From Lepidodermella squamata (Eukaryota; Animalia; Gastrotricha): a stretch of 64,000 nucleotides of DNA. Each line of letters begins with the position of its first letter. Within the stretch, counting starts at the first letter, position 1. The notes below the pieces were generated by a model. That model worked only from the letters and a program-made list of their open reading frames with translations. It was not told the origin of the DNA and did not search any database. The stretch spans positions 124,001-188,000 of the forward strand of contig JBLDXI010000034.1 in NCBI GenBank assembly GCA_047495785.1. The letters run 5' to 3'. This document shows, piece by piece, positions 217 through 64,000 of the stretch. The position numbers and the translations under genes are program-made.

Positions 217-3200
217 TCAAATACGTTCGCATATGCCAGCAGACAAGCTTCCGCAAGATCCTTGCACAAGTGTACCCGAATAAAGTGCTGTGCCTGCGTA
301 ATAATTAAAATGAACAATTAAAATCGCTTGAAATCCGATTCGCCTTACATTGCCCAGAGTTACCGCCGGCATCTATTGAGTAATCGAACGCTGAGTTGTT
401 GAAAGGCTGCCCCGTTATCCATGAAAAAGCGCTGCGGTTGCTGCGCTTAGCCCCGATAAAGGCATCGACACCAAGCTGGTCGACTATCGCTTTAGCTGCG
501 TCGAATGAGGCTTGGTCCTTGAGAAGGGCGAGTGTCTTATTGCGATCTTGGCAAAATTGGGCCATTTGATCTCTATCGCCAGTTGTATTTGAGATCTCCA
601 TGTCTGCCAATGTCTGAAGAAAATTTTCTTATACGATTGTCGTGAGAAGTCGTGAGCAAAAACTTACAGCGCCACTGCAAAGTCCATACTTCGCGGAATC
701 ACATGGCGCATCAATGTAACTGCCATTGGTTAAAACTATACCTGGAATGAACGAAAATACAGCTTAATCATTAAAAATACACGGCGAACCCCAATTTGAA
801 CAATAGACTGATTGTAATTTGATTCGATTCGATTCAAACAGTATATTCGCTGTGAAATTACTGATTGAGGTAAGCACATCCTCATTCGGAAAGTGGCACA
901 CCTGCGCGCTGCGCGCATTGGCGCATTTCAAAAAGTCGGATTCGCACGCATGCGCATTAGCGCACACAGGGCCATTGAGCTAACTCCGTCTGGCCAACCA
1001 TTCGATGGCCCTTTCATAGGTTAAGGAGCACGATTGTGTCATTTTGAGCTATTTTCAGCTGTTAAAGAGAGCAAATAACAAACATGTTTCCTAGCTGTAG
1101 GCAGTCTTTTTCAACAAACGCTTCTCTTTATTAATTACCAGGACCCCATATCCAATCGACGGATTTAATTTTAGCTTATAAACCGTGATACCCGTGACGT
1201 TTCGACAAATAAGAGTGCATCAGACATAGGCGGGCCTCCAAATGTTCTCAGGGCAACGCTTCTTTTGGATTGATTGATTTTATTTACCCTTTGGACAAAA
1301 ATAGGAAACGTCGCCAAAAAATTGTCCTAATCTCCTTACAATGCACGCTGCGATAATGGTGATTTGATGCAAATTTATAAAAAATCTATAGAATATTTCA
1401 GGGCTCAATACCGCCCTCCTTAGTTTCGTGCCGCCCACAATATTAATAAAGGTAAAATCGGACTTGTAAATTCGAAACGATGTGCGGGCTCTCAACGCAT
1501 GCGCAAATCTTTGTCACTTCACTTTTTTCGAGCGAGAACACGCGCGCAGCCCTGAAGTTTTAAAAAATTCCGACTTACCGCTCGCGCAAAGTCCATGTTT
1601 ACCCTCTGGTGGCGCAATTCATGTTGGGGTCAACTAATGGTAAAAGGATATTAATACTTTCCCTTCCCTCAAAAAATCACGCATAGATAGGAAATCATCG
1701 ATCTTACATTCGCCGTAACCGTATGGGCTATTGTTTTGCCATAGTGGCGTGTCGATCGGGATGATGCTGTGATCGTCATCCCACGTGAAATCAGCAACCA
1801 GCCCGATAAAGCCTAAAACCGTAACATTTGACGCGGCAGCCAACTCATCTGCCGTGAAAATAGTGGCCAAGCGGCCACCATCCTGCTTACAAGCTTCTAA
1901 TTGAGCACGGAATAAGCCTTGGCGGAGCGAGGATTTGAAATACGATTTGACAGGTTTGGTTGGGGCGAGGTCCTTTAAGCAGGCCGCGTAGTTATCAGCA
2001 AATGTTGTCGAGTTGGAATATATTTTCACCTAATTTGAAAAAAATTTGAAAAGAAGACAGATGTAATTATTTCAATTATCTGCTCACCGCTGTTGAACCA
2101 GTTGGGCAAATGTTGTAACAATTCTTGATTGTTGAATTATCACACCGGACGGCATTCTGAAAATGTTGGAAAATTTGAAGGAAATCTGCGAAAAAATCGA
2201 ATCACGTTCTTTCCGTTATTTTCTCTATGTTTATCCTATAAAGATTTAGTATAGCTTCAATTAGACTGGAATCCACGCCAATATATTTTATACAGTGTGT
2301 CCAAAAAATGTTCATACAACATTAAACAACATTATGAATTGCATATTTTGGCGAATTTTCCCAAGGTTGACCCAAGGTTGAACACGATTTTGAAAGCGCT
2401 AATCGCTAGGTTTATGTGGTTACAAGGATTTTAAAAACCAGGGCACGAAGTGGGATTCTCGAGCTAGGGGGTATTTTCGGGCCCAAATTTTATGACCAAA
2501 AGGGTCCCCTCTGTTGTTTGCCTCTGGCCTTGTGAACTGGGGGGTACGATACCCCTCATTCCCCCTCTCATTCCCCCCCTCCGTACTTCGCGCACTGTTG
2601 AAAATTACGTCTTCTCAAATCATCGTGCCCGTCTAAGCTAGTTCGAAACAACTAGAAAAATAATATTTGCCTAGATCAAAATATTTGTTACAATTATAAA
2701 AAAAATCATAGTTTTCATTTCAGATGTATATACTTCGGACCATGAAGAGGTCGGAAATCGTGAACTACGATTGGGATTTGGTGTTTATTCAGCCCGAATA
2801 CTCACCCAAGATAAGCAAGCGGCTTTGTTTCTGTAGACGCCAGTTGAAAATTGTGCGGTTTCATTGGCCAGGCATTTTGTGCTGGCCAGTCGGCATGCAG
2901 TGAACGCGTTAGTATTCGCATCGAAGCAGCGAATGTGGGGCTTCACGGAATCAGCTCCTGAATTAACAAAATGAGTAAATGAAGAATTCAGCAGGGCTGC
3001 AATAGTTGCGTCCCAGTCGGAAATCAGTAGACCGAGAAATAGCGGAATGATCGAATTAGGATCGAATAAAGATCTATCAACTATGATCGTAGAAATTAGG
3101 TCACAGCTAGACCGAGGCGACCATTCAAACAGCCCTAATCGTGTAAATTGCGTCTATACCCATAGATCGAGGCTCCTCGATCGCCGCTAGGTCAGATTTC

Positions 3201-6200: not shown

Positions 6201-8933
6201 TACCGTAGTGTTGGAGCAGGGAAAATCGCTCGGAATGCAAGTGACGAATTGCTGAGCTGAATCGACGCAAGAATCGAACTTCTTTTTCTGTTGATCAAAT
6301 TCTCTTTGATTCATTGTAAACATGGTAGATAGTTATTACCGGAAATTGGTTCAAATCCGTAGTATAATTGTACATGTTAGTTTTTAGCGGGAAGAAGCCG
6401 TTGTACGAGCTGCCGACCTGGAATAACGTTGACATTGGGGTTATTTTTTAATTTTTTATTTAATAGTTCACAGAGTCGCAACACTGGTGCATCGGCCGAA
6501 TTTCAATCAACATCATTTCCACAAACGTGTTTATCATTCATTCAGTTTTCTATGGATTTCTTCCCATATTATACTAATTAGTCGTTGTCAACCTTTTCAT
6601 TCTAGATAATTGTAATTATTCCTAATTTTTATTATTATTATTTTGTTATTTTAATTGAGCAGCAATTTCATCTCAAAATAAGAGTTTCCTTTTTGATAAA
6701 TTGTTTCAACAACAACTACAAGATGAAATTGGTTGATTCAGCATTAGCCATCCAACTTGAATTTTCGGTGTTTTATTATAAGTTTTATTTGGGATAAGCC
6801 AGGACAATGCCAAACTACGAATGTGAACGACTGATATGTGGTTACCAAATTACAGGCTACCATACTACCGAAGGTCTCCTGGCCTCCTGGAACCTATTGA
6901 ATCCCCAGCTACAATCAGTTTGTGCACACTAAAGCCAAGCAAGTTGGAGGCGATAGAACGATTGAGAACCCTGAGACAGCAGGAGGGTGGATCATTCCGA
7001 GCACTGGCGGAGCGAGTCAGGGTTCTCGTTGCAGCGGCTCAGCCGTCACTTTCGCATGATCAACTCGAAGAAACAGCCCGCGACTTGTTTCAAACCGTTT
7101 TCAGCGATGAGCAAAGGAAAGTAGAAGTGCAACGATTCATTGTCGTATGAAACAGCCGGTGGCCACGCTAGCCGAGTTGGCTGAGGCCGGGATGGGGCCG
7201 CAACAATCAGAATTACCCGAAAGCGAACAGCAAACCCTATGGCAATGACCCATCAGGACCCCGGAAACCTTCAGGCTCGTGGCGCCTCAGGTTCGAGCGG
7301 CTCAAATGATCAACGACGATGAAAAGAACGAGCAGGAAGCGTTGATGTGGAATTGAAAGCATCGGCGCTGGGACCGAGATCAAAACAAAATAAAACTGTG
7401 AACAATAACTTGAATCGTGTAGAAGGAGTTCCGTTCCTGGTATGCGAAAATCTCACAGTTGCCGCACTGCTCGATGCGAATTTCTTCAACAAATATATAG
7501 GAGACTGGAAGGTCCATATTCCAGAGCTCAATCCCAAAAACAAGAGGCATTCGAAAGGTCCTTAGCAGTGAATCGAGTGTCGGTCACGAAACGAGATGAC
7601 GCTCAGGAAGCGGTGTATAAAGGTGAAGCGAGGGCATGATTATGTAAGTCACCTTCTAGGACCGTTCCGGTCTATGGTTGAAGCTCTCTTGCGAAAACAC
7701 GACGATCTGTTTTGCTGGGATGGAGTGGTTAAACCATTAAAGATTCCGGTTATGCACGGCACCGAGACTCACCCTAGAGCACCGCCGCGAACAGAAAAGA
7801 ACCGAAGATACAATCCTCACAAGCTGGCAGCAATTAGGGAGCTGGAGGCTCCTTTTACGACATCAGCAACACCCGTCGAAGCGCCAACCGGGATAAACAA
7901 ATGCCCTGCCCCTACTGAAGTACGGCATGTACGCTCATGTTTCCACGGCGGTGCTTGATCGGCTAGAGGCGGTCCAAGAACGTTTCTGCGGAGCGACCGC
8001 CGTCGATCATCAACCACTGAAGAACGTCGTTCTTGTTCATGACTTGTCTCTACAAGGTCATCGTGGCACGCCGTGGCGCACCCCAGTTGCAATCGAGGTT
8101 CAAAATCCAAGAATAGATGCGCGAACGCTTCGTCGATCGCTTGAATGGCACCAATGTGAGTTGCGGCAGTCAATGCTGTGGCAAAGCGCGGTTTAACGAC
8201 CACCAGGTACCGAGAGCTACCACAACGTCTAAATGATAGCCTCACTCCTCACAGCCTGGAACAACCAACTACCCGCTAGATGCTAGATGCTTTCCCGAAA
8301 ACACTGGCATAGAATTTTTCAAAATTCAGATGAGCTCTCTAGGCCTGAGCAATTCGCAATTCATTAATATTTGGTAGATAAAAACGGCTTGAAATCCCAT
8401 ACAACTTTGATAAAAAAATTTAGAAATTTTAATCAGAACGGTGCGTGAAAAGTGTACATTTGTCAACAAATCTTGGAGCGTCTAATCACCGATGACATAT
8501 CGATGTCCAATTAAGTAACCAAAAAATCAACTAACCATTATCTCGTCCGTTTTCGCACAACCAGGGCTTCCCGGTCGACATGTTGCCGCATAAGTCGTCA
8601 ATCGGTAGCACAATCTAGCAGTCTGTGCGGAAATAACACAATTCGATATACAAGTTAAGCCAGCACTCAATCAAAAAATCAAAGAAACTCACCGACTTCA
8701 TGCACTTTGATTGATCCGGCCAACCTTCGCCAGGCTGCCAAAATACGACAATTCATAAAACAATTAGGTAAGAATTTCGAGTTATTAACCTGATATTCGC
8801 TCAATTTGAAACAGCCGTTTGATAATTCGCGGCAACTCGTGAACGTATCGTCGAATTGGGAGAAGCAACGAGCCCAGTCGCCACACAGAACCGCATCGAT
8901 TGCGATGAAAAATACGAGGACAATTTGCTTCAT
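217..8933 (-). CDS. Secreted 5x Cys-repeat + double CTLD protein, paralog 1 (12 exons)
   Basis: ATG 8933 (MKQIVLVFFIAIDAVLC signal peptide, then GDWARCFSQFDD). GT-AG exons about 8790-8933, 8693-8734, 8536-8622, 6340-6417, 6205-6288, 6099-6154, 2806-2958, 2088-2156, 1709-2029 (CTLD1: C..DGGRLATI..FIGL..W), 668-741, 349-613 (CTLD2), 217-293 ending GICERI-TGA. Same exon series as the paralogs. Confidence 0.85.
2439..2597. mobile_element. hAT-like MITE
   Basis: TIRs CAGGGCACGAAGT / ACTTCGCGCACTG; imperfect 8-bp TSD ttaaaaac/ttgaaaat; related copies at 5831 and about 46080. Confidence 0.7.
3012..5520. mobile_element. Non-autonomous CMC/EnSpm(CACTA)-like DNA transposon in an intron of paralog 1
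   Basis: Ends CCCAGTCG...CGACTGGG, 2-bp GT direct repeat on both flanks, subterminal (TA)GATCTA motifs clustered at both ends. Confidence 0.65.
5831..5997. mobile_element. hAT-like MITE
   Basis: TIRs CAGGGTGCGAAGTA / TACTTCGCACACTG; 8-bp TSD accgcagg/actgcagg. Confidence 0.75.
6836..8280 (+). mobile_element. Degenerate, internally deleted Ty3/gypsy LTR-retrotransposon relic
   Basis: Frameshifted pieces resembling gag (LRQQEGGSFRALAERVRVL), pre-RT (LLRKHDDLF..H...T.P..P....RR), RT-RNaseH connection (PAPTEVRHVRS), RNase H (DHQPL) and integrase (TTTRY..PQ.LN). No LTRs seen. Confidence 0.65.
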
Positions 8934-12887: not shown

Positions 12888-12919
12888 AGAGAGAGAGAGA
12901 GAGCGAGAGAGAGAGAGAG
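12888..12919. repeat. (GA)n microsatellite
   Basis: agagagagagagagagcgagagagagagagag. Confidence 0.9.
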
Positions 12920-14318: not shown

Positions 14319-16534
14319 ATGAAATTACTAGTAACAATGGTGGCTGTGTTAATCGCTGCCAGCAACGTGGTGCGAGGCGGTGATTGGGCGCGTTGTTTCT
14401 CGCAGTTCGATGACTCATTCACCGATTGCCGCGAAGTAACTAACGGCTGCTTTCGTTTGCGTGAATACCAAGTATGAGAGTCAACGCCCCAATTTGCTTT
14501 CAATTTTTACAATTAAATTCTACAGTTTGGAACCGCAGCAGATCAAGCGTCTTGTTTGAAAGCGGTTCGTTATCTTAAATTAAATATCATTTTCTGTAAA
14601 TCCTCATCATCAAAACAGACAGCAAGATTGTGTTACAAATTTGCCACTTACGCAGCGACATGCCGGCCTGGAAATCCTGGTTGCGGAAAAACAACAGAAA
14701 TAATGGTTAATAATCTCATAAGACAAAACAAACCGAATTCAGAATCATTATTCCTGAAGTATTTTTTCTATTTTTTAAGGTCGGAGGCTCTTATAACGGA
14801 GTATATCCATTCCGAGGAAATCTAGCGTCCTGTGCTACTGACTACAACGCTTTCCCAGTAATCATTCCGATTCCTTAAATATGGCGGTAACAATTTTATT
14901 TCTCACAGAGTCGAAACTTCAACGCCTGTGTTGATGGAGCTCAAAAGTTGATCACCTGCGTGCCGAAGGAATTCTCGTGTCCAAGTGGGGTAATATTTTT
15001 GTTTATTTTTCATTTTCATTCTGCTATAAAAAGTCAAATGGCTTGAATTCAGGTAAAATACGCGGAATACTCGGGCTTGGAGACGTGTCTGCGAAGTTTC
15101 GACAGTGAGTTTTTATAAAGCCAGTTTACTCCAATTATAAAGCAATTTTTCCGAATTGTTTTAGGCGACGCTGCTGATTCTATCAAGCCGCACATTCGGT
15201 GTTTCAATGCTGTCACGCGTGAATTCACTGCGTGCCGACTGAGCAGCCGCGGCTGTGGCGCCAATGAAACGAGTGAATTTTCGACGGGTGTCTACAGAAA
15301 CAAAGCCAACTGCTTATCATGGGTAAGTTAAAGGAAACCTATTTGGTTTTAGATATTTTAAACTATTTTTCATTTCTCAAGAATGCTGTTCAGTGCGATG
15401 ATTCGGTCAGCAAGAAATGTTACAATAACTGCCCAGCAGGTGCCACAGTGGTGAGCAGTTGATGAACTAAAATCTACAATTAGCTTCATTCACTTTGAAA
15501 TTAGGTGAAAATATATTCAAACTCGACGAAATTCGCTGATAACCACGCGGCCTGCTTGAAGGACCTGGCGCCAGCGGAATCAGCAAAATCATATTTCCTA
15601 TCCTCCCTCGAAGACGGCAACTTCCGTCAGCAGTTCAAGGCCTGTAAGACTGACGGCGGCCGTCTGGCGACTATTTTTACAGCAGCTGATTTGGCTGCGG
15701 CGATACAGGTTGCGAATTCAACAGCGTTCATCGGGTTGGTGGCGAGTTTCAGGTGGAATGATGATAACAGCGTCATGCAAATGGACTCGCCGTTTTGGGG
15801 ATTTGATACTCCGAATTCCTTTGGCGCATGTGAGTTTGATGACCTATAAAGGAATCTTGTTTATAATTAGTTTCTCCGCATCTGAATATTCCTCAAATTA
15901 ATAAGCTGGATAAAAGTTGAGTAATGAAAAACTCACCAAGTAAAAGTGAAAGGCGGGTTGAGTGTCTATCTATAACAAAATTATGTTTGAGATATAGTTT
16001 ATGTGCCTATGTTTATGTGCAGGTATGGCCATGTCATCCGGTTTCGTAGATACGTATTGTTCGTCATTTCCAAAGTATGGCCTGTGTACTGGTGATGTAA
16101 GCTTTGCCTAACGAACATTAGCAGTCTCAAAATATTTCATTGTTTTCAGACATTAGTGGAGATGGAAATTTCAAATTCAACTGGCTCTTGGGATGAAATG
16201 GCGAAGTATTGCCAAGATCGCGGAAAATCGCTTGCCATAATCAGAGATCAAGCAACATTCGATGCTGCCAAAACGAAACTGGACGGAAGTGCTACCTTCA
16301 TCGGGGCTAAAAAACACAATCTGACTGATTATTCTTGGATTACTGGAGAACCATTCAACAACTCGCAATTCGATTTAGCCGGCGATCCATACGATTCCGT
16401 CCACTGTGAGGCTATAACTGGTTCTTTTATTTATGCTATCTTTTATTTGTTATGTAGGCGTGTCACTTGACTCCGGTATTCTTAAATTAAGAGGCTGCAT
16501 TTCTCCTTCCCATGGCCTATGCGAACGCATTTAA
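14319..16534 (+). CDS. Secreted 5x Cys-repeat + double CTLD protein, paralog 3 (compact, 12 exons, inverted relative to the others)
   Basis: ATG 14319 MKLLVTMVAVLIAASNVVRG-GDWARCFSQFDD; exons about 14319-14471, 14526-14564, 14619-14705, 14780-14857, 14909-14989, 15053-15104, 15165-15322, 15382-15450, 15505-15829, 16023-16096, 16150-16405, 16458-16534 ending GLCERI-TAA. Confidence 0.9.
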
Positions 16535-31676: not shown

Positions 31677-31704
31677 CTAACACTATATTTTTTGAGCGAA
31701 TGCT

Positions 31705-44500: not shown

Positions 44501-46982
44501 TGCGTTATACCTGAGTGAGATTGAGGCAAAGCTGAAGATTGCTGCTCAGCAAGCTCGAGGCAGATCCAACAATTCCGAGCTACATATTGAAATAGATGGC
44601 AAAAAAGTGAGAAGATAATTAGGGCTTATTTCAGTTTTTTGTTTAAATTGCCGAAATAGGCCAATATTAAATTTTACGTACTAAGTGAAACCCAAGTATT
44701 TGTTGATAAGGCTTACGTCAAATTTTCCGCTGCCGGATGGGCAATTTTCCAAGCAGGTGCCACCGTTTACGTCGTAGCAGAGTTGAACAGACTGCAAACG
44801 CATTTTAAGGGTTATAAGACTCATAAAATCCAAGTTACGAAAACGCACCCCGACTTCGCAGACGGCCTTAGTTGTGTAAACTGTCGGACTCAACGTCTAT
44901 TTCCATAGAATAAGGCAACAAATTAAACGCATTCAATTTGTTAATGTGCGACTCACATCACTCCCAGTGCAATTCAACGGAGCTTTCACACAGCCAGAAA
45001 AGGACGGCTTGGTCCAATCGAAGCATCGCCGATGAGGGTACATAGCAGGTAGAGCTAGAAGCAATCGAACTGAAAAGATTTTTCCCTATAGAATAAGTGC
45101 GAACTTGTCTTGCATTCCGGCAGAGAATTAAACGTTGCCCCAGCTACACTGCCACTCGGGCAAGAAGCGCCATCCGAAGCCAGTTTACATTTGACGAAGG
45201 CGTAAGTCGTAGCGTCGACACAAAGCGTGTGAGGTTGCTAAGTAATTAGGAAATGACAATGGCTTTTCAACATTTCGATTTCTTAGCATTACAAACCAGA
45301 GCGATCCGACATTCAGCGTAGTTGCTAGCAAAATCGGAAGCGTTGTTGAATATCGAAACCTGTAGAAAATCGTAACATCTTTAATCTGTCTCGAAACATG
45401 ACAAACTGAATGCTGAACTGGTAGAATCTTCAGTTGGATATTTATTTTTCAGAAATTTGAAATTTGTCTTCATAACTAAGTAATTTTGGCCCGAAATTCG
45501 ATTTTCATTGAGAAAAAAAAAACTTTTTTTCAACTCACAAGCGTAAAACTCGATGAGGGACAACTGTTTCGGCAAACAAGACCCCCAGATGAGGAACACA
45601 GCGCTGCCGGCTAAAGAGAAATTAGAGAAAGAGAAAGCATCGGAGGGCATTTCATAGTTTTTCAAAGCTTACTCCCTCAACGCAATGGGCTCTGTCGATG
45701 TAGGAACCTGTGCTAAAGGCCTGAAAAATGACAAGCTTAGACATAAATAAATCCACGACGTAGTTGTATCACATTGGTCAAAAAAGTGGAATTGCAAGAT
45801 GTTGATTGGCAGCCCTTGAATGAGAGATCGCTCAGCAAAAAACAGCGGTAATGAGTCTTGAAGTTATCGGCATTTCGAACAACTAGAAAGCAAGCATATA
45901 AACACAAAATAACTTAACAAAAACAAGTTGCTCACTGTATAGCTCCGAAAAGCATAGCTCCAAGGTGGCCACAGTCCGAACATATGCCTGTGTTAGGAAA
46001 ATAATATGAGCGCAAGTTAAAATTCAAAAATCAAGCTTGAAATGTTTGATTGAAATCTGAGCTAAAACCCCGAAAAACCACAGGACCCTTTGGTCATAAA
46101 ATTAGGGCCCGAAAATACCCCCTAGTTCGAGGATCCTACTTCGCGCACTGCACCGAACCTTAGGAATTTCGAATTCGATCGATCGGAAAAATCACTAAAA
46201 TCGATATCCCGATTGATCACCGTTGTGGCTGTGAGAACTCGAAGCCGCCCATTAGCCTCCGAGATACCACGGGTTAACTTAAGTGGTATTCGATAAGGCT
46301 ACGCTACAAAAGAAGAAGAAATGAAGCTGGACTCACATGATAAGCCGGACAGGTACCATTGAAAGCTATACAGACTCGTTGACCGCCTTTGTCGCACAGA
46401 TAGGCCGGGCGGGTCTGCGTTTTTCAAGACGTAAAATTTGTTTGCAGCTATCGCAAAAAAACAAACCAGGAATTTTTTGATATCGCTCCGGCATTCGTCG
46501 TATTTAGTCGAGAAGACATCGCCGATAAATTCGAAGGTCTATAAATCAAATCGATCACCGGAATCAAAAAAGAATATGAATCATTTTAAACTCACAAGAA
46601 CTTCGTCCGAAGAGCAACCAGCGTTTCTAGGGATGCATCGCATGCTGAGCTGCCTGTAGTTGTAACAGCTTCTAGCCGACTGCGTAGAGCATAGGACAAA
46701 TTCGCAATAAATTCTGGGAAAATGCGTAAATTACCCCTGCTGTACATGACCCATAACTATTCAAAAGAGTTCCAAGCTGAATATAATTCAACATGAGCGT
46801 TAATATCGAAAAAGATGACAAAATTATTGATTAATTACCCAAACTTCATCGAGGTATGAGCAGTCGCTTTTACAGCCAGTAAATGAATCGTTAAGGCGAG
46901 AGAAGCAGCGTTTGAATGATCCTTGGGCGTCGCAAATCGTGAAAATCGGCAACGCAAGTAGAGGGAGAAGCCACTTCGTCAT
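41579..46982 (-). CDS. Secreted Cys-repeat protein with two C-terminal LamG/pentraxin-like domains
   Basis: ATG 46982 MTKWLLPLLALPIFTICDA-QGSFKRCFSRLNDSFTGC (homologous to the CTLD genes' N-terminus); many small Cys-repeat exons 43650-46840; LamG1 starts AYWPLN (about 43340) with KWHHIGVTY; LamG2 AYFPL..SFTLSFFAKP; stop about 41579. Confidence 0.8.
46080..46150. mobile_element. Partial copy of the hAT-like MITE
   Basis: ggtcataaaattagggcccgaaaatacccccta...tacttcgcgcactg, reverse complement of the 2439-2510 part of the first copy. Confidence 0.65.
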
Positions 46983-47524: not shown

Positions 47525-50018
47525 TCAGATATCAGAGTGAACAGTTTGATTCTGATGTTCATCGAATTCATTTTCAGTTGAGGCTTTCGACTTCTTAGCC
47601 ATTGGAATAAAAACAGCCGAACCAACAAAGGATGAGTAGACTAAACATATCATCGAGATGAACACTGTAACAGCATTACCATGGTGACTGCTGTCTTGAA
47701 GAATGAACACGATAGCAACGCCGCCGATGTAGAGCGACACAGCGAATAAGTTTGCAAGAAACATCGGCTTTATCTGATCCACGTTATGAATTCGATTCGA
47801 TTTAACCAAGTGAGCGGTTGAAAATGTGGCGAGTAGACCGGTAAGTAAAATGGTCATATCCACGGCAATCAAAATCGTGACGAATATAGACGAATTAGTT
47901 GAAGCACAGTTGATGTTTCTAGCTCCGAAATAAGCATCAATCTTGAAGTCATATACCAATGCTACGCGATCAACGTCTTGCGTTATTTCAGACACGGTTT
48001 GAGTGAGAAACCAAGTAAGGATTACGATGAAATTTAAAGCCATCGAGATAACAACTACGAGACATACAAACTTGTTGCTTATGTCAGCTTTCATTTTGGC
48101 TTTCGCTTCGCGATATCTTCGTTCGTGATTGCTGCTTGTCACTCCATAGACATCCCTTAGGATATGGATTGAAGACTGAATGTTGATTAATGAGTGTCTC
48201 CTGATAGTTAACAAAGATCGCCTCGTGCTGAGAATGAAACCAGCAAGGGTTCCATGGGCTAGGGCAAGGCCAGTCGTGAGGAAGAAGACTCGGCCGTAAC
48301 AAATCGATGAGCTGCCTTGAGACACAAAGAAAGCTGCTGCTATGTCGATCAGAACCAAGGACACGCACATGAGAATACAGCTTAGCTTCTTGTTATAACA
48401 GTTGACTCTTATTGCCAAAGTGACCTTAGTTAAAAAATAACAAACTAAAGTGGGAAAGGGTTAAAGTATGTCTCATACTTTCGTGAGGGCAAGAACAAAA
48501 GCTAGAACTGAGATCGTAGCCGTTGCTGAGATTGAAATGCGATCTAGCTGAATGATTACATCAGCCGAGTCGCTAGGCAACGGATAGGGTAGGGGAAGAT
48601 GCGAAACGGCTGAATATGATGAAATGTTTGTGATGTTATCGCTGTTGCATGTCACATGATGCGTTACAAGTAATTTTGAGGCGTTAGCGGACCAATGCGC
48701 CACCGATTGGGGTTCAAAGTCGTACTCTACCCTTGCCGAGTACTTGAACTTTCCATAGCGTAGATTGCCGAAATCTAATCGCCTTGCACTATCGTTGGCT
48801 ACCATCATCACTTCATAAGGCTTGGTTTTATAATCTCGCAGGGACATGTTTCTACTCCTTAGAATCGTCTCAGTCTCATTTAGGATCATAATAGCCGTCA
48901 GGATACGGTCGTAGCAAAGATGGCGAAAGTCCGAGTCCGGGGTTACTAAACCACCAGTGTAATTGCTGAAAAGAGCCTCAAATTCGGGCAAAGTGTGGCC
49001 AAGGGCCGTTCGCCCAGTCATGGGTCTCAGAGCATCTAAAGGTGAGCCGATGAAGTAGGTCATCTTGAACTGTTCGAGAATCATTGAGCGGTTGCATTCA
49101 GCAGAAATGTTGAAAGGTAAGGTTGTGACGTCGATGAAGCTCAAAAACTGGAAAATGAATAGGTATCTCGGCCCGGTCATCCTGAACTTGTAGGCTTGGC
49201 AGAGAAATTTCAACCCAGCTGCTGCTTCAGCAGTTTCCATTGCAAACACCCGAATGTCTCTTGCTTTCAATGGCGCCATGAACTCATCGCTGAAATCTAA
49301 ACTACCTTCGAACGCCTGAACCTCAAACCCATTTGCCAGGGCAATTTTATAGAAAAGATTTGCAGTCTCATAGTTGTAAGAATTGCCATTGTTGAAAATG
49401 ATGCCGAGCTTCCTGATTCTAGTCTGAGTTTTCAGGAAATACAGCCTGGCAAATATCGGGAGCTCCGCTGGCGATCGGATTCGATACATGTTGGGGTACA
49501 GGCCACGGCGAGCTGTTTGGACTGGAGAAGTGCAGGACCCAGCAATCATGAGCATGTTCATGTAGCCAGCTGTTCCGCCCCAGGCCTTGCAAGCCGGTGA
49601 CAGGAAAGGTCCCATTGTTACCGGAGACGTATAGACATCAGTCATTGCTTCTGTTCGACGAGCGAAATCGATTGCTTGTCGGACGGCTTGGGCTCCACCG
49701 GGTCCTTCAAGATAAGCTGAAACTATGCTGAAGAATGAAGGAGAAATGCCTACCTTCGTTGACGAAATCTAGTTCGATTTGGTAGTCTGGCAATATGTCG
49801 CTTCTCCTGTTCACAATATCAGCCACCATTTGCTGAGCAGCCTGGCACATTTTGTTGTCTCGCGGCTCGTAGCCTGTCATCATGAGTATAGACAGCATCG
49901 ACAGGCGATGCCGCTTTACTTGATAATTGTCTCTTTCAAAAAGGTCCATTTGAGATTCAACCCGCGTAATGAATGCCATTATGAAGACCATTGCAGCTTT
50001 GAAATGCATATCCCACAT
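47525..50018 (-). CDS. Class C GPCR, GABA-B-receptor-like (Venus flytrap + 7TM), divergent
   Basis: Exons 49754-50018, 48479-49704, 47525-48424 join in frame; VNRRSDILPDYQIEL, YPNMYRI, LCQAYKFRMTGPRYLFIF motifs of the ANF-receptor domain; no Cys-rich domain; seven hydrophobic segments. Confidence 0.85.
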
Positions 50019-51074
50019 TTCTCGCTGTCTCAGAATCGACAAGAGATGTTTGGCAAGTTTTGTTAAAATGTTGAAATATTCAATTATGTTTAACTTTTCT
50101 CAACAAATGCCGTGCAATAGGAAGTCGTGCTCGTGTGTATTATTCTGCACGCCGCCCTAAATTGTCCGCAACTATGTGCAAATCAACATTATGGGAATAT
50201 TCAAATTTCAGGCTTTTGTGTCAGGCGTGGGAATGCTTCATGGGAAGCGGAAAATAGTGCTTTTCAGACTCTGGAAATGATAGGTGTTTAATTTCACTCT
50301 AATATACAGTTCTCCGCCCGCGATTCTATCTTGTCAATCAGCCTACAACGATTCGAAATATGCACTCCGTTTCAGCCCTGCAAGCAGAGGTGGCTTTCTT
50401 TGGAACAGTATTCACTTCCGCCGGACCCTTTTTGTCTAAAACCATCGGTATACGGCGTGACATTTTTCATCAGACATAATATGTCTTCTTTTTTCTTTCA
50501 CCTTTTATCAGACAACGAATATCTTATTTCATCAGAAATATCGTTAGCGTCGTTGAATACCTAACTCGGATTTTGGCTTGCTTACGAATGCTTCTTTTTT
50601 ATTTTACCGCAGACATAAATGACCTTTGTGTGACCTACTTTTTTACCGCCAGCAGTGCAATACTTGTTACTGGAAACCAAGTTTCACTGAAATTTAGCAA
50701 ATCAGGTAACTGCTCGAATAACATCAGATTCGATTGATGTTGCGATAGAGGCCTCGACGCGTTGTTTGGACTGGTGAAGTGCACGACCTAGCAATCATGA
50801 GCTTGTTCATCAGCAATCATGAGCATGCGAAGCTTTCCAGAAAGAAAAAGACAAGCTCATCCAACGCGTGGAAAAGGCTTGCTAGGAGTTGCATTTTTGT
50901 ATTTTGAATGAATATATAGATTTTGGAGTTCGTGTTTTTCCTAATTCGGAAAATAATTTTGTAATGCTTTTTTGGGTCCTCTTTTTAGCGGAACCAAATT
51001 TACCGTGTATCGGAAAAAAACATTCTAGCAGAGGCATTCATGAACTTGCGAAACGAAGCAGTTAAAAATAACCT

Positions 51075-51455
51075 GTCAGATACTCCTGATGTTGTTGCTG
51101 GTGAGAAGACCCGATGCATTCACTGGGTGGTGAGCCAGGATGAAAATAAAATCCACGATACGAAAAACGAAGTAGCCCTTGGATCTGCTGGTCAGGTATT
51201 TTAGCTAAGCATTTGCTTTACTCGCCATTTTTATACTCTTCATTGCAGCCCTGGTTTGGGCGTAAAGTGGTTGCCAGCAACTACGGACCGGAATCGTGTG
51301 GCTCGCCAGTATTCAACGAGAAAGATGAGCTCATTGGGGTCCATCTCACTGTCGACAGCAATACGAATGTAGCTTGGGCTGTGAAATTCTCGCTGGTTGG
51401 TCGATTTTTGGACGCAATACGTCTGTCAATCGCCGAATTGTTAGAAACCCGTTAG
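51075..51455 (+). pseudogene. Trypsin-fold protease C-terminal fragment (gene or pseudogene)
   Basis: GPESCGSPVFNEKDELIGVH motif; apparent intron 51196-51248; no intact N-terminal half found. Confidence 0.45.
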
Positions 51456-52517
51456 AAACCCCGAAGCTTTCCAGACAGAAAAAGACGGGCTCATCCAGCG
51501 TGTGGAAGACGCTTGCAGGGAGTTGAAAGTTGATGTCACGTTCTGAGAGAATCAAAGCATTGGTGATGATCTGATTTGACGAGATAAGAAGAGTTATTGA
51601 AGCCATTTCTGGTGATGATGAATGCATGCGATAGCAAGTTGCTCTATTATTACCATTGGATATGAATAAAAATGCTTTTGGCTTCTCAATTTTTGTTTTT
51701 CAATGAGAAAAGTTCAGAGCTCGTGTTTTTCCTATTTCGTAAAATAATTTTGTGAGTGGAACCTAATTTGCGGAACCTGATTTCGAGTAATTTTTGGAAT
51801 TTTCTTCTGGCCAGAAATAACTTTTCGGATGTTTCTTGCGGGTCAAGATTGGCCTTAATAATTCTGAAATAATCCCCAAAAAATTGAGCGTAAAATGCTC
51901 AATAGGACAGAGTGTTCAATTCAGAACTCATTCTTCGCTTAAAATTGTTAAAATTGTTAAAACATGACTCTTCGCACATTTCAACTTTGGTTCCGCAAAA
52001 TGCAAATATGGTTCCGCTGCCCGTGAATTTGGATCCCCTTTACTCGGTTTTTTTATCGCCAAAATTAATAATTTAAGACTCTTGAAAATACTGTAAAATA
52101 GCCCTATTCCTTACTAGCAAGCATTTACACTTCGGAAAAAAATTTGTAAAAAGAAAAATATGATTCAACGTTGAAAATTGAAAGGAGGTTTAATAAAAAT
52201 GCCCTTTATTTTCAGTTAAACTTGACTTTGAAAAATGCTTGAAATAATCCTGACAAAAAGGGAGAACGGGGAACTTCAAGCTGGTTTGGATGTGAGGATT
52301 TTCATTCTTTGATCATATCTTTTCGCCGACTTCTCAAATTTTGGGACATGATCGCGTGTAAAAAATCAGGACACCGGAGAAAATTTCAAAAAACTACTTG
52401 ATTAAATTAGAAAATATTAGCAACTCCATATACAACCGTATCAAAATTTTATTTACTCATAATGTATCAAAAAAATTAACAAAAATCAGAAAAATCAATT
52501 CACAATCAATTATGAAA

Positions 52518-54768: not shown

Positions 54769-55956
54769 TCCACGAGAATTACTTCAAATATTGAAGAAGA
54801 GAAATACTAGAAATTAAAAGGAATGCAAAATTACTGGCTTTCGCACTGTTCAGGCTATAATAAACTTCACCGAACCGTAAATAAGGGTCATTAAAAGTGC
54901 GCGAGGTCAAGTCAATCAGGAAGTGCGCAGGTTGCGCGCACGCCATAAAAGCGCGCACCCACGCAGTTGAATTAATGGTCTTCGGTCGAACTCGAAAAAA
55001 TAGTGAAAGAAAATCGGGCAATTATTTGAGGGATGCAATAATTAACCCCGAGCGGTCACATTATCAATTTAATTTTGGGTGTTATTAAATCTGATATTCG
55101 GCGATTTCGCAAAGATTTCCTTCCATAATTTTACGGCTCCAGCGATAGATTTTCTCAAGATAATATGGTTTTTCGAGTTTCACTTTCCCATAAAATCTAA
55201 CTGCTTTGATTATCAAAGCAAATTTTGATTTAATTTCAACATTGCGCGTGTTTTTCGCTATCGGCGGTCAGTTTACGAGCTATAATTGCGTCGATATCGA
55301 TTTCTAGCATCGATTTTGCAAATCAGTGATTTTTCCGATTATCAGCAGTCTACGAAACAGGAAACCAATATTAATCATTCCGAGGGTGTATCGCTATCAG
55401 TCCGGGATTAAACCGAGAAAAACAGGTAAGTTATTTCAGAGATGGGGACGGGAACAAATCAATGACACAAATCAATCGAAAGGAAACCAATGATTCAGCG
55501 TGTCCCATAATTATGCCACTTGTCCATGGGATTCAAAAAAACCCGGGGAAATATAACGTCCAACCGGGTAAAATACCACACATTACCGAAAATCGGGATT
55601 TTCCGGGAAATTTTTCGGTAAATTTCAAATTTCTTCAAATTCACGGATAAAAAATGGAAGATTTTCAAAGTAGTTTCAACTTCGTAAAATTAAAATGCAC
55701 AAAATTTCCTAAAAAATCCAAAATTTAAAAATTATGATACGTCCAAAAAACGCCGCTAAATTTGAAATGTAGCAATAAATTGTTTTATTTTCTCCCGTAG
55801 GAAAATAATCAGCTCAAAGATCAATGTCATGAATTTAAATAAAGATTTGAAGCGATATAAATCACAAGTGATCATTCAGCAAAAGCGAAAAAAAGTATTG
55901 AGAGAAATTATCCAGTTCGTTGTTTCTCAGACACGGCATCTCAATTAGCCCACCAA

Positions 55957-58900
55957 TCAAGAGCTCAAACAGGTGTTCCAGTTCGATGAGAAATCTTCAG
56001 GATTAGGCGGGTCAACTTTGAATACACGATCCTGGTTAAATTACAAGAATGACAAATCGAAATTTTGAAATAAATTTTCAGAAAATAATTACTAACCGGG
56101 TAATAGGCGGGCGGGCAGGTAGGCTGGCCGCTATCGTTACTCGCTACGCATTCGGGTGCACCACCAGGTGTAACGCAACGCAGGGCTCGCTAAATACAAG
56201 TAAAAAATCGAAATTTCATCATTTTCCAGATTTGTTGAAATTTAATTTTGAATATTAAAATTAAAATGGAAAAAATCTATCAAATTACATTTACCTACAC
56301 TGAAATATTTTCAATTTTTTCCAATTTTTCAAAATTAAGAAATTTGAAATTTCAAGATTTTGTAGAGTAAAATTCCAAAATTCTAAAAAATGCAGCGCAA
56401 CGCAGGACTCCCTACAAATCATAGTAAATTTTTTTGTAAATTGGTTCAAAATTAAATGTTTAATTTTTAATTTCAACATTTTAAATTTATTTTTCAAATG
56501 TTGAAACAATTTCGATCTGAAATTTCATGATCCTATAAAATTTTAAAAAGTTTCGGAAACACCTTTGCAAAAAAACTGACCCCCAAATTGCATTTCGCCT
56601 CGCTTTCATAGACGTGAGGGTCGCCCCAGATTGTCGCAAAAGGTGAGCTGCACGGCTGGATGGCCGGTTGGCAGCCGCTGAATGTCTTGTCCGCGTTGAA
56701 GCACCGGCGATAGGGTACTAATAATAAAACGCGATAATAATCGTGAATTTTCGCGGAAAAAAATTGAATTATTTACCCGACTCGCATTCGCGGCGATTAT
56801 TCCAGCGAGGCAAGTCCGAAGTGAGCTAAAAATATTTGATGACAAATTAAAAAAATTTAATATTTTCGAAAATTGAAATTATATTTTTTTGAAATTTTTT
56901 TGAAATGAAATTTTACCATGTTACCCGGGCAATCGACTATTGTTGGGACGCATTTAGCTTCTTGATAGGTCGGCGAAGTTGGCGTGTAGTCGAAACACAG
57001 TTGGTGAGGAATCTGAGCAGGAAATAAAATGAATTTTTTTTTGAAAAGTCTCTCATAAATTTTGGTAATAAATCTTACCGGAAGTGGAGGATCTTGCGAA
57101 ATACAACTTTGCCAGTTACCATAGATATCGGACGATGGTAACGAGTAGATCTATTTTTTAGGGCGAAAATTGAATTTTTCTCGAAAATATTTATTTTTCA
57201 ATTACAAACCGAGAGAGAGCCGGGCGGGCACGGCGGAACAGTGCCGACATCTTCAACACAGAACCCATCGCCAGATTTTGACAGGCAGTAAGCTACAGAC
57301 TAACATTGGAAAACGAAAAAAATGTGTAAGAATTTGTCAAATTTCGAAAAAAATCAACTTACGCCAGCATAGCAGGCGTCCCAAATGAAAATATTTGTTG
57401 ATTTCTGAATAAAAACGATTAAATAAAAAATCAATTTCTAATAGGTATTTCTTACCGGTCTCGCAGTAGTCCAAGTTGCCGCGACTGGAATACAGTCGAC
57501 GAAATTTCCAGCGGCGTCAAATCGGTGTTGTAGCGGTTGAGTTTCGCATTCAATTTTCGTAGCAAATGGGGCGAGAGGCGTTTTATCCTGAGTAGAAAAA
57601 GTTGGATTAAAAAAAAAAGTGGGACATTTCTTCAATGTCTTACATCAGCGTTGGGACATTTCACGTCTACAGAAACACATGTACCCAATCCATCAGTTTT
57701 AACGCACAGCTTGTGTGGCTTCTGCAAGAAAAAAATGTATTTTTTCATGGAATTCAAAAATTTCAAAATATTTCATAATTTTGAAAATATTTAAAAAATT
57801 GAAAAACAAATTTCACCATTTTTGAAAATTTATTTAATTTCAATTTTATACCATGTCGGCTCGACAAGCCAGGTAATTATCACGCAGCAAAGTTGACGCT
57901 TTGTATTCAAACTGAAAATGATTACAAAAAAGTAGAAACAAATATTTTCTTTTATATTTTGAAATTTATTTACAATGCGAATGCACCCCGGGCAGTCGTC
58001 CGCTTCGCCGGCCTGGCACGCATCAACCGATTTATCACCAGTAAAGCAAAAGACAGCAGCCTATTTGTCAACTAATTTTACACACAAAAAAATCGGAAAT
58101 TATTGCATTTTCTTACCGAATTAACACAGTCAAGTCGTTTCGGGTAATATTGCCGGCGGCCCTGGAATAAAATATTCCGTTTAAATTTACGAATTTCAGA
58201 AAATGTGTCGAATTTACAGTAGCCATTCCAGAGCCTGGTTCACGCCCTATCGCGCATCCCGCAAACTCACCGCTCGGCGAAAGTATAACAGGAACGTGAT
58301 TTTGATCTATAGCGAAGATTTCATCGTCATTTTTTCCTATAAAATTTCACGAAAAATTCGAACCTGCGAGACAGCTAGCCAGATTGTCAAAGGCCTGCGT
58401 TGTGTCGGGTAGCTTCAAAAAAAATTAAAAAAAATCAAATAAACATTCCAGCGCAAAATTCATAAAAATAAATTAATCGAAATAATTAAAATATATAAAA
58501 ATAACTTGGGACAAATTATTTGAATCATCAAAACACGTATGGTTTTGTCCAAAATTCCAAAATTTTCAATTGTAAAATTTCAAATTTAGCTTTACAATTC
58601 AGAATTCTTCAACAAAATTACAGTATTTTTTGAATATTTAAGATTTAAAATTTCAATTATAATATTTTGGTTTAATTTACCGCGTCGAGTGGACATTCCT
58701 TGCCATCAGGAGCACAAGCCACCACGTCGCCGTTCACGTTTACGCAAGGGTAGTGCTTGAACTGATACGGAAAAAATTCAGTAAAATCAACACTTGGTGG
58801 GTGAAACGAAGAGATTATTTTTACCGCAAGTTCTAAGGTTTCGCAAGTTCGCATGCTTGCCGAAAACAACTCGCCAGGGAACTGGTCTCCCACCTTAAAA

Positions 58901-61900
58901 AATTGTCGTATTTCTATGTCATTTTACGAGATATTCATTAAAATCGCACTCGTTGGGCCTGTGGGCATTGCTCAGCCGAGACACACTTAGTTAGACCGGT
59001 TTCTGGGTAGTAGCACTGGTGGACATACTGCGAAAAAAATTGTTTAAGAACAATTTCGAAATAATGAAGTTTTAATTACGCCGTGATCACATTCGCTGGA
59101 ATTTCCGTAGATAGCCACGTTTGCCGAACTGATCTCGAAACGGCAAGGCTTAATAGCCGGCTGGCAGCCTTCGAAATGACCGCTTCCGTCAAAGCAACGG
59201 CGCAGGAAAGCTGAAAATATTCGAAACTTATCGATTATTTTTTCAAATAACGAACAAATTCCGAACCCCCGAAACCCGGAAAAATCCCGATAGTTCGGTA
59301 ATTATCGGTTATTTTACCCGATTGGACCAAATTTATCTTGATTATTTATTCCGATTTTCCCCGATTTTAGTTGTAGTCACCTTACATACTATTTTTTAAG
59401 CTAGAATTTTCGGATCTCCCAGCAATGCGAAAAATACCGAAATTTCGGGTATTACCAGGGTTTCCCTTGCACCCTCACACATTTTTGCAGGTAATTGACA
59501 AATTGAACCTACGAAGGGCATTTGTGATTTTACCGAGGAAATTGCAAGTTTCCCGAAAAAACCCGGAAAATACCGAAATTTCGGGTATTACCGGGTTTTC
59601 TCTAAAATTGTCAATTTTCAGCGCTTACAACAACAATTAGGTGAAAAAATGTGTCGGAAAACTTACTCGTCTCACAGTACGTCTGGTAATCGGCCTTGAA
59701 GCTCGTCGCCACCATGCCGCTAGGGCAGAGCGGACTGCCCGGGACAATTTCAGGCGCGCAAACCGCAGTCTGCGCCGAGGTCGAATCAACGCACAACCGG
59801 TGCGGGATCTAATCACGAAATAAATTGAATTTTTTCCAGGCAGCTCGTTATATCATACCAATGCTCGCTTATTCGTGCAGCTTTTATACGCGCCTGAGAA
59901 ACTGCCATTCGAAAGTAGATAATCCGCGATCTGTCCCAAATTTAGCGTCAATAAATCGGTAATTTTTGAAAATTAAATTACCTTAGTACTACCCGCTGGG
60001 CATTCTCCGCCAACTAATACGTAGTCAAGGCAATGGCCGTTAACATGACTGAGACAATCTTGAGGGTTCTGATAAATAATTGAGAGAAAATTATAAAAAT
60101 TAATTTTTTTTCGATTTTCTTAAAAAAAATAACCAACCTTTGCCGATCGACAGAATTCGCTCGCGTCACGGACATAGCAGAAAATCAGGCCCTGAAATTG
60201 AATTCAATTTTTTTCAATTTCAACCAAAATTCAAATCAATTCACCTGTGATGCCTGGCAGCGTTCAACTGAAGGATAAATTGTCGCATCGTTCCACTGAA
60301 AATTAATTGAGAATTATTTTTATATTTGAATAAAATTTCGCGACCTACCACGTGATTCGGCTCGAAAATTCCGGTATTAACCGCCGGAAAGCAGCCGATG
60401 AATGTGCCACTTTTAGAATCAAAAACACGCCGCTGAGCACCTGTAAAATTTTGATTTTAATACCCAAACAATTGAAAATTTCACAGTAATTTGTTTCAAT
60501 TTTCGACCATAATTTTTATTATTTTTTTCATATTAAGATTAGTACCTTTCTGGCAGGCTGGCAGGCTTTCGAATCTGATATCCGGGACCTCAGTGCCAAT
60601 AGCACAGTCAGCATTTGCCGGAATGCAATTAGCTTGGTAATAAGTGGCCGAAGATTCACTCGCGTCGAAGCAAACTTTGTGCTCGAGCTGAAAACAATTG
60701 ATACAATTTTTCAATAATTTTTCTTGGTAATTAGTACCAAAGTTGCAGGATCCATGCATGTTGAATAGGCGGTTCGGAAATCATTTTCGTCGCTTTCAAA
60801 TCGCCAAACCTGATTTATCGAAAATTTATTGAAAAAAATCGATTTTTCGAATTTTCGTTAACAAAATTACCGGATTTGAGCCCTTGGGACAATTTTCGCC
60901 TTCGGTAACGCAAACTCGTTCACCAGTCGAAGACAAACACAAAACAGCCGCCTTAGAATGACGGAAAATTAGAAATTAAATTGTAATAGCGAAAAATAAA
61001 TACCCCAATGCTGCAGGATTCAGCTCCATCAAAAATTATCGGTTCGCCACTCTGGAAAATAGAAATCATTCATTTCTTCAAAAATTCTGAAAAAAATCAA
61101 ATTACAATAAGTCGCATTTCTTGCCAATAATCACACGGCACGACAGAACTTTGACAGCCCAAAAAGTCGCCAGTTTTGCGGTTAAAGCAACGAATGAAAG
61201 TTCCTTAAAAATCGGAAAAAAATGTAAAAATATTAGCGAAAAAAATTAATTCTACCAGTCTCGCATTCAGCTCGTCCGTTATAAGGTACAAGATTCGGCT
61301 AAGGAAGAAAATTAACAAAAAATGCAATTTTAAATTGAAAAAATTTGAAAATCTCGAAAATTGCATACCAAGGCCTCGGCATCTCGATCAGCTGGTACGC
61401 ATCGGATCGTAGCAGCCGGTGGGCAAAAATGGCCGGGTGGGCATGTCGAGGGGATGTAAACCGGGCAATTTTGGCCGACCGGGCAAATTAGCGGCGTGTT
61501 TGAAGGTTCCGGGCAGTTTTGGCCGACTGGGCATCGAATTACGAATGGCTGGGCCGGGCAGTAGTAGCCAGCAGGGCAGACAACACGCCGATATGGACCC
61601 TACAAAATTAGTAATCATTTAAAAATCCGATAAACCATTCGAAATCATGAAATTTTAAAAATTTTAATGAAATTTTAAAAATTTTAAAATTTTAAATTAA
61701 TCAAAAATTTAATTCAAAATTTTCAAAATTTTAAATTTTTTAAAACTTACAACTTGGCCTCTGCATTCAGCAAAATTCTCGCTGTACAAGTTTCCGCCAT
61801 CGAACGTAATCTGATATGAAAACAAATTTTAACTTCAATTTCAAATTTCAAAAATTTAGAAAAAATGAATTACCGCTGTTGTATCATTAACAGGGCAATC

Positions 61901-64000
61901 GGTTGCAACTCCAGATAAGCATTGCCTGGCTAGAGATTGCGGGTCGCTGAGCGATAGCCCAGTCAACGTCACATCCGGCGAGTAGCAACGAACAACAGGC
62001 TGATTTTTCGATGGAAAATTAAAATAAAAAAAATTATAATATCCGAAATACCCCAGTTTCACAATCCAGCTTGCCCGAGTACACCTTGCTGTCAACGTAC
62101 TGAGAGAAAATGAATATTTTTCGAAAAATTAAGGTGGAATTGTTGAATTCAACTCACGTTAGAAGAGCCAGTTGGACAAGAATTGAAGCAGCCGATGAAA
62201 TCGCCCTGCATGTCGTGGCATCGAACATGCGAGACACCTGCAATTAAAATTTCATAAATTTCAAAAAATTCAAAATTATTAAAAATAAATTAATTTCGAA
62301 ATTAAAATTTTAAATAATATCTGCGAAATTTGAGAACATTTTTATGAAATTACCTTGAAGACATTCAGCCAAAGTGTCCCTTTGCCCATCTTCACTAGTA
62401 ATCTGAAATTATTTTAAAAAAATTATTCCCGATTCGACAGAAATGGCGAATTCAAAATTGTCTCACCTGGCCGAGAGGGCACGATTTACCAGCGGGATGG
62501 CAGCCAATAGGCAAATTCGACTGCGAGTCAATACAGAATTGATGTCGCGCCTGAATTTAATAGAAAATTCAGTCTTCAGATTTGACCCCCGAATGATTAA
62601 TTTTACCAGGTCACGTCCAGAGAGGCATAAATCGTAATTTTCCTTGAACGTTCCCAAAAACATCGGCAAGGCAACTTTCTCCAACGAGGAAGGGCAAGTG
62701 TCCCCGGCGTAGCACGAATGGGCGCCGGTTACGTAGCTGTCGTAGCAGTGAACAACGCCCATTTCCTGCGGAATCGCCGCGGTCATGCAGTCGTCAGGAG
62801 TCAAGAAAATTCGAGGAGTAATAGCCTAGAAATTTTTCATTATTTTCGATTTTAAATTCTTTTCAATCGATGGTTATACCGTTTGCACCAGTTCCCATTT
62901 GCAAGGATAAATGGCTTTTTGACAGCCTTCAAACGCGCCACTCGAGTCGAAGCAACGACGGAACGACCCTAGAAAATATCGACAATTGTTGAAAAAATTG
63001 TAAAAAATTATTAAAAAATTTTAAGGCTCCAAATACATCAATGTAAAAGGAATTTCCAGGGTGATTCAAATATTTAGAAATTTCAAAGTTTATTAGTTGT
63101 TTATCTCTCCTAAAGAATTTCGAAATTTTTCGCAAAATTTTGAAATTTTAATTTGAGCCCTGAAAGGGTAATATCGGAGAATCAAATTTATAAACTCGAA
63201 ATAATCACCATTTTCACACGCTCCTCTCGATGGGAAAAACGAGCCATCTTTCTGAAGAATGACCTAATTTTAAAATAAAAAAATCAATAATAATTTCAAA
63301 TATTTCCACGCAGAATTTTACGATGTTATTCTCTGGGCAATTGATATTTTCCGGCACACAGAAAGCTTGCATTGAAGTCGCAACATTGTATCGATTATCG
63401 AAGCACATTTTGTAGTTGATCTATCAGTTTGAAATTTTCAGAATTTAGGTGGATTTCATTAAATCGAATTTCTTACTGCAGCGGTCGGGTCGATGCATCT
63501 AGCGTAATTCTCAGCAAATGTATCCGCATACGTATAGTTCACGATCTGGTAGAAAAAGTTGAAAACAAAATTTCAAATAATTTCTCATCAAATATAACTT
63601 ACAGATAGCGAGCCGTCGGAGCACGACTTAATGTCAGTCACGCATGACCAAGTTCCGGTAGGAGAAACACAGAACGTGACACCCTGTTGTAAACGAAACA
63701 AAAATTATTCTCAAATTAAAAGGAGAATTCACAGAAGCAAATAATAAAAATGTCAAATTTCCGATTGAAAATTCAAAAATTCGATTCTCAATAATCTTTG
63801 AAGAAAGCATTGAAATACGGTCAATTCCAGCTGTTGAAAGTTACAAATAAAAATTAACAGAATTAACTTGGATTTCAATTTTTGAAATTTTCTAGAAATT
63901 CGAACTAAAATTGGATAATTCCAGCAGAAAAATCTAACAAAAAAATAGAAAATTGCGCGAGACTTGCCCCAGAATTGCACGTTTCCTTGCTCCTCGAATA
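55957..64000 (-). CDS. 3' part of a very large Cys-repeat protein encoded by dozens of micro-exons (5' end outside the window)
   Basis: Many 30-130 bp GT-AG exons encoding [RLV]C[FY]D...C...CP and F...Y..C half-repeats (e.g. KVCFDASESSATYYQANC, YADTFAENYARC); last exon ends WNTCLSS-TGA at 55957. Confidence 0.8.

Follow-up and report, generated by a model that had tools for sequence, protein, structure and literature searches.

The window, by which we mean the whole 64,000-nucleotide stretch of Lepidodermella squamata DNA analysed here, is eukaryotic DNA of about 40% GC with a modal intron length of 50 to 65 nt. It holds 62 copies of an approximately 45-amino-acid repeat with four cysteines, spread over seven genes (A to G) and one remnant (T).

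The genes of the cluster and their presumed expression

All seven genes gave open models with canonical splicing (GT-AG throughout, apart from one GC-AG). The product of each of genes A to E is 482 to 485 amino acids long and comprises a signal peptide, five repeats and two CTLDs; the five genes have 12 exons in common. Gene A (8933-217, minus strand; 12 exons, 482 amino acids), with its repeats in the order a-b-c-a-b, is a mosaic whose stalk resembles those of genes C and D and whose 3' part resembles that of gene B. The same architecture is found in gene B (14319-16534, plus strand; 482 amino acids), gene D (36512-33625, minus strand; 482 amino acids), gene E (40629-37256, minus strand; 485 amino acids), and gene C (30144-21900, minus strand; 484 amino acids), the last of which carries an extra, intron-like insertion of 1,166 nt in CTLD1 (24429-23264). 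A sequence-only reading of this DNA had counted five intact CTLD genes; all five were modelled open here, with gene C intact only if its insertion is removed by splicing. Remnant T (about 12545-11500, minus strand) is decayed and frameshifted and consists of a b repeat and two CTLDs of the C/D type, with neither a signal peptide nor an upstream stalk.

The two remaining genes carry the repeats in other settings. Gene F (46982-41579, minus strand; 27 exons, 1,007 amino acids) encodes a signal peptide, 12 repeats arranged as four complete a-b-c triplets, and two LamG/ConA-like domains; one exon pair (45773..45987, minus strand), found with the class-a HMM, gives the a-b-c order and the phase-1 intron. 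Gene G (64000-55957, minus strand) has 45 exons encoding 25 complete repeats in triplet order plus the end of one more, and since its 5' end lies outside the window, both the repeat count (25+) and the length (1285+ amino acids) are lower bounds. Its stop follows directly after the last repeat and is followed by AATAAA, no CTLD or LamG exon was found downstream, and the protein has no TM segment. The spliced models agree with the architecture initially read from the sequence (five double-CTLD genes, one double-LamG gene and one headless gene), save that the pentraxin label attached to the heads of F had to be replaced: these heads match only Laminin_G_3 (PF13385, E 1.5e-8, the two halves aligning at 23% over 214 amino acids), and no pentraxin was among the PDB sequence matches. 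The models of A to E and F begin with a signal peptide and have no TM segment, indicating that these proteins are secreted. The CTLD proteins carry 7 to 12 N-glycosylation sequons each; Ser plus Thr amounts to only 14 to 21%, and no mucin or low-complexity glue tract was present.

Contigs from a presumed RNA sequencing run cover the exons of D and E, the two genes compared, at about 97 to 100% identity. In D, whose exons these contigs match near-identically, they have zero depth in bins that are wholly intronic, and one joint skips 351 nt at a modelled 351-nt intron. In a DNA run, 13 to 18 different related contigs pile up on single stalk exons, indicating that the family is much larger than the cluster in the window.

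The four-cysteine repeat and its triplet unit

Exactly four cysteines are present in 56 of the 62 repeats, at spacings of 7 to 21, 3 to 10 and 14 to 26 residues (medians 9, 6 and 18). The pattern proposed beforehand, C-x(8-11)-C-x(3-7)-C-x(12-25)-C, therefore had the number of cysteines right but was too narrow, being fitted by 39 repeats. Its example motifs (FADNYAACL, FADNYAECL, FASNYAEC and FAENYARC) all occur where they had been reported, and repeats starting with RC[FY]D and repeats ending in F..NY..C both exist, but the two features do not fall on one repeat: they belong to sub-types a and b, respectively.

The repeats of the three gene classes were compared with HMMs built from one class at a time. 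Alignments that took in C-terminal half-exons came out misaligned and were set aside. An HMM from F alone scored 43 to 66 bits on the CTLD genes and 44 bits on G; F in turn scored 48 bits with an HMM from G alone and 51 bits with one from the CTLD genes. Controls shuffled with every cysteine kept in place reached maxima of 6 to 13 bits across the HMM tests, so the cross-class scores of 43 to 66 bits compare with 12 to 13 bits at most for the shuffles. The direct link between the CTLD genes and G is weak (-4.5 bits one way, 4.5 to 27 bits the other), and it is F that bridges them. Together, these scores show that the repeats of the CTLD, LamG and headless genes make up one homologous family, as the sequence-only reading had supposed; the supposition thereby survives its own refuting condition, a failure of the three classes to align significantly.

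Within this family there are three sub-types that follow one another in the fixed order a-b-c: sub-type a (R-C-F-D...F-x-G-C...Y-x-S/N-x-x-x-C), sub-type b (...C-P...F-x-x-N-Y-x-x-C) and sub-type c (H-x-x-C-V-D...C-x-P...C-P...F-x-S-x-x-x-C). In gene G, repeats that lie 3, 6, 9 or 12 apart had a mean score of 41.6 compared to 25.5 for all others, a difference reached in 0 of 5,000 permutations. When class HMMs were built only on G, 9 of the 10 F repeats then labelled received the label predicted by the order, and the best cross-gene match carried the same label for 54 of the 62 repeats. A repeat tree, built on only 52 columns and with many forks unresolved, needed 5 label changes versus 29 with shuffled labels, the repeats clustering by class and not by gene. 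All introns at the c|a boundary are in phase 1, and all remaining stalk introns are in phase 0. These results demonstrate that the real unit of the stalk is the triplet, with its a-b-c order bounded by phase-1 introns. HHalign linked sub-types a and c at a probability of 90% and b and c at 83%, indicating that a single module was triplicated to give the triplet. In addition, repeats 1, 2, 4 and 5 of F find their best matches in repeats 1, 2, 4 and 5 of the CTLD genes (repeat 1 clade, 99/98), which points to a single ancestor of the LamG and CTLD genes that already had a signal peptide and stalk.

Losses of cysteines indicate how the remaining ones are likely to be paired. The second repeat of gene A has lost Cys4, and all four of the two-Cys repeats retain C2 and C4; that C1 and C3 were lost together suggests C1-C3 and C2-C4 disulfides. 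Structure models were made for a single-exon a-type repeat (56581..56715, minus strand; pLDDT 86.5) and for an exon with the end of an a repeat and a whole b repeat (62607..62825, minus strand), and the second had the topology of the first. The predicted fold is a beta-hairpin followed by a short strand and a helix, probably stapled by the two disulfides; neither model is a beta-sandwich.

The repeat had been put forward as an unrecognised domain, and the searches bear this out. It had no match in Pfam (30 exons, E up to 1), in NCBIfam, among 1.84 billion representative proteins, or among metagenome contigs, ESM Atlas features and viral folds; among PDB sequences it found only carboxypeptidase Y at E 0.07. 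Searches of a word-indexed protein collection, for which a CTLD exon and the repeat alignment served as queries, also returned nothing, although they are length limited and so weak evidence. On these grounds the repeat appears to be an undescribed, lineage-specific extracellular domain, and we regard it as quite probable that the domain is new. Invertebrates often have lineage-specific cysteine-rich modules joined to CTLDs, and the stalk-plus-head design, which is already known, is therefore not in itself surprising.

It is unlikely, in our estimation, that the repeat instead belongs, as a distant relative missed by the searches, to an animal domain already described (FN2, Kunitz, WSC or a nematode Cys module), leaving only the architecture new. 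Like the Kunitz/BPTI and FN2 domains, the repeat is a small disulfide-rich extracellular module. FN2 has four cysteines paired 1-3 and 2-4, the pairing proposed here, and its size is equal; however, the repeat had no Pfam match to FN2, and FN2 was absent among the structural matches. The Kunitz fold has a hairpin and a C-terminal helix and ends in F-x-S/T-x-x-x-C, similar to the end of the repeat; identification with Kunitz/BPTI was rejected because the six-Cys pattern and the reactive-site (canonical binding) loop are absent. The searches were run exon by exon with a profile of 43 positions whose estimated detection limit of about 41 bits lies near the cross-class scores within the window, so that relatives more distant than the window's three classes could escape.

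The structural comparison also brought up the MbtH-like proteins (PF03621), at 8 to 15% identity and up to 22% for the second model. We tested for homology using both enterobacterial and diverse MbtH profiles. The MbtH HMM gave at most 6.5 bits on the repeats; HHalign placed MbtH best against class c, in the right register and with 0 of 100 column shuffles as good, at E 0.027 and a probability of 1.8%; and one pair out of 806 had p=0.0005, with 0.4 expected by chance. The MbtH motifs S-x-W-P, P-x-G-W and W-x-D were not found in the repeats, whose sequences lack the conserved Trp residues, and MbtH-like proteins, unlike the repeat, work in the bacterial cytoplasm as partners of NRPSs, have three conserved Trp and lack disulfides of this kind. 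With links this marginal and HHalign probabilities of 1.8% or less, the repeat was not accepted as an MbtH homologue, and MbtH ancestry is improbable. Still less probable is the combination in which the a-b-c triplet would be a new, approximately 135-amino-acid extracellular domain composed of three MbtH-type mini-folds stapled by disulfides, perhaps descended from a bacterial MbtH-like gene gained by horizontal transfer, and a universal gastrotrich scaffold for a germline-recombining recognition repertoire, as an independent, Ig-free counterpart of the FREPs and VCBPs.

Heads and their recombination with the stalk

Searched as partial exons, the CTLD heads match PF00059 with E values of 7e-6 to 0.03, and the ten of them, when aligned, keep the core four cysteines and the WIGL-like and W-x-DG-like motifs. 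EPN or QPD is present in none of the ten, and the canonical site-2 WND is absent; the single WND, in head B1, sits at the W-x-DG position and not in the site-2 strand. By the established rule, Ca2+-dependent sugar binding by these heads is therefore unlikely. The two kinds of head are joined to the stalk in different ways. The LamG head follows a c repeat at a phase-1 intron, the intron type that ends every triplet, consistent with the assembly by exon shuffling that had been suggested for the whole cluster. The same cannot be said of the CTLD head: the last part of repeat 5b lies in one exon with it, and the exchange that was observed took place one repeat earlier, at a phase-0 intron.

Among genes A to E, amino acid identity is 68% in the stalk and 41 to 44% in the heads. 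For C and D, the closest pair, dS was of similar size in the stalk (0.49) and the heads (0.64), while dN/dS was 0.19 in the stalk versus 0.51 in the heads. These results show that the stalk is under strong purifying selection and that the heads diverge faster; dN/dS stays below 1 and gives no demonstration of positive selection.

Gene A shows that stalks and heads can change partners. Compared to C and D, it is 75 to 86% identical over exons 3 to 7 but 47 to 60% identical over the head exons, over which C and D are 58 to 75% alike. Identity is 84 to 86% in exon 7, 65 to 71% in exon 8 and 47 to 60% thereafter, and dS between A and C/D goes from values of 0.6 to 0.8 in the stalk to saturation in the heads. 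Upstream of intron 7, the informative sites that group A with D outnumber those that group it with B by 168:49, whereas downstream the ratio is 80:181 (Fisher P 6e-25, for a breakpoint chosen from the exon identity table). The introns follow the same division, intron 6 of gene A being D-like (z=5.3) and intron 8 B-like (z=4.4), and intron 7 (2157..2805, minus strand; phase 0, between repeats 4a and 5b) is the most likely recombination interval. In AU tests, the head topology was rejected for the stalk (p about 5e-7), and the stalk topology gave p=0.077 for the heads; the latter is not significant, so the claim of recombination rests on the site patterns, dS and introns. An amplification chimera was rejected, as each half of gene A reaches no more than 86% nucleotide identity with its neighbours and so falls short of near-identity. 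Taken together, these results are direct evidence that recombination or conversion joined a C/D-type stalk to a different block of last repeat plus heads, and the proposed sharing of one stalk by swappable heads is thus upheld. The recombinant may be A itself, or else the C/D ancestor with T-type heads.

Known counterparts and proposed function

In Biomphalaria, the VIgL proteins (FREP, CREP and GREP) join a shared N-terminal module to different C-terminal lectin-type heads (PMC5433772). The gastrotrich proteins are like them in being secreted, in having a shared N-terminal module and differing C-terminal lectin-type heads (PF00059 in A to E, PF13385 in F), and in belonging to an expanded gene family. 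VIgLs, however, are defined by IgSF domains, for which we found no Pfam match in the cluster: the entire N-terminal region consists of four-cysteine repeats, with models that are not beta-sandwiches. The gastrotrich heads also differ in being paired and without canonical sugar motifs. The VCBPs of amphioxus and Ciona are likewise secreted, with a repeated N-terminal module and a C-terminal domain of carbohydrate-binding type, a two-part design that the gastrotrich proteins share; unlike VCBPs, which have V-type Ig and chitin-binding domains and vary in their V domains, the cluster genes gave no match to either domain and vary most in their C-terminal heads. Nematode clec genes, in which CTLDs occur with CUB, vWA or CW domains, form tandem clusters whose products are secreted, carry two CTLDs of non-canonical type and include a partner domain specific to the lineage. 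The gastrotrich cluster resembles them in each of these respects, but its partner domain is unrelated, and its stalk is also found with LamG heads or with none. The likeness to FREP, CREP, GREP and VCBP proteins, raised at the outset, thus extends to design and not to membership. By analogy, we propose that the stalk/head proteins may work like snail VIgLs or like collectins and ficolins, in which a shared N-terminal module carries a variable head, but they belong to none of these families.

Our main reading, to which we give a probability of about one half, is that the proteins of the cluster form a lineage-specific, fast-turnover family, are secreted to bind ligands, and combine a constant stalk with a head that varies. 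The three repeats of a triplet would pack as one unit of about 135 amino acids, and such units would form a protease-resistant spacer or scaffold on which the lectin-fold heads would be displayed in pairs, whether within secreted mucus, on the surface of the body or inside the gut. There, the heads would bind diverse microbial or particle surfaces without a canonical Ca2+ site, and tandem duplication together with recombination within the many short introns would generate new stalk/head combinations in the germ line. A conserved stalk, faster-evolving exchangeable heads, turnover through pseudogenes and many gene copies are what families recognising variable ligands usually show, and we therefore rank recognition first. 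The lack of EPN/QPD and canonical WND in the CTLDs, a dN/dS below 1 and headless gene G count against the main reading, and we put it at slightly short of an even chance that the family is a recognition repertoire.

As gene G shows, the stalk functions in its own right, and this gene also favors the main rival, a structural or adhesive secretion (glue, mucus, cuticle or egg shell), in which the repeats would polymerise or cross-link, the heads would bind matrix glycoproteins or the substrate, and G, a headless repeat protein of 1285+ amino acids, would be a filament or scaffold. We consider this possible but clearly less likely. Points in its favor are that matrix and adhesive proteins often contain non-canonical CTLDs and LamG domains, that the CTLD proteins carry N-glycosylation sequons, and that gastrotrichs use temporary adhesion (PMC4016567). 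Conversely, the faster divergence and the exchange of the heads, the turnover through pseudogenes and the large copy number suit recognition of variable ligands better than they suit a fixed glue, and the low Ser plus Thr content and lack of mucin or low-complexity tracts also speak against a glue. That the repeats are themselves binding or effector modules, with an MbtH-like interaction surface or Kunitz-like inhibitor loops and with the heads as targeting accessories, is unlikely, given that the MbtH binding-surface Trp residues and the Kunitz reactive-site loop and six-Cys pattern are missing and the sequence links are marginal.

To our knowledge, almost nothing is known of gastrotrich secreted proteins, and we found no description of this stalk/head family in the published literature. 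The cluster provides an extracellular domain that appears to be undescribed and for which fold and disulfide pattern are predicted, as well as a measurable case of stalk/head recombination. It also offers a candidate family for either adhesion or innate recognition where the phylum has so far had no molecular candidates, and its importance would grow if MbtH ancestry or a role in defence proved true.

Other genes in the window

A lone LamG-like coding exon was located at 20566-21360 on the forward strand (PF13385, E = 0.002), and no Cys stalk was found upstream of it. On the reverse strand, a dCMP-deaminase-like gene composed of two deaminase-type halves (PF00383) occupies 16940-18557, and a GABA-B-like class C GPCR gene (ANF_receptor plus 7tm_3) occupies 47525-50042, with fragments resembling the latter recurring at about 50700-51700.

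Introns and a lost cysteine in the stalk genes

Retroelement-like ORF fragments, as judged by eye, were observed in intron 3 of both gene A (6836-8245) and gene C (26486-27175), two of the CTLD-headed genes; the gene C fragment had no Pfam support. One interspersed repeat was common to intron 7 of gene A (2410-2640), the most likely recombination interval of that gene, and intron 5 of the LamG-headed gene F (46050-46195). The first CTLD of gene C, and of this gene alone, is interrupted by a putative intron of 1166 nt (23264-24429), which has a short CAAG(A) repeat on both sides and looks like an insertion turned spliceable. In the second stalk repeat (type b) of gene A (6340-6417, reverse strand), Tyr occupies the Cys4 position, which would leave Cys2 without a partner.

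Unusual repeats and possible block duplication in gene G

Two irregularities were found in the headless gene G (reverse strand). In one c repeat, a Cys/Pro-rich micro-repeat, C-P-x-G-x-x-C (61420-61599), stands in place of the first half, and an additional exon of 18 codons with two Cys (60138-60191), probably a partial duplication of a repeat, lies ahead of a b repeat. Repeat-to-repeat similarity across 55957-64000 was highest at lags of 9 and 12, which suggests duplicated blocks of three to four a-b-c triplets.
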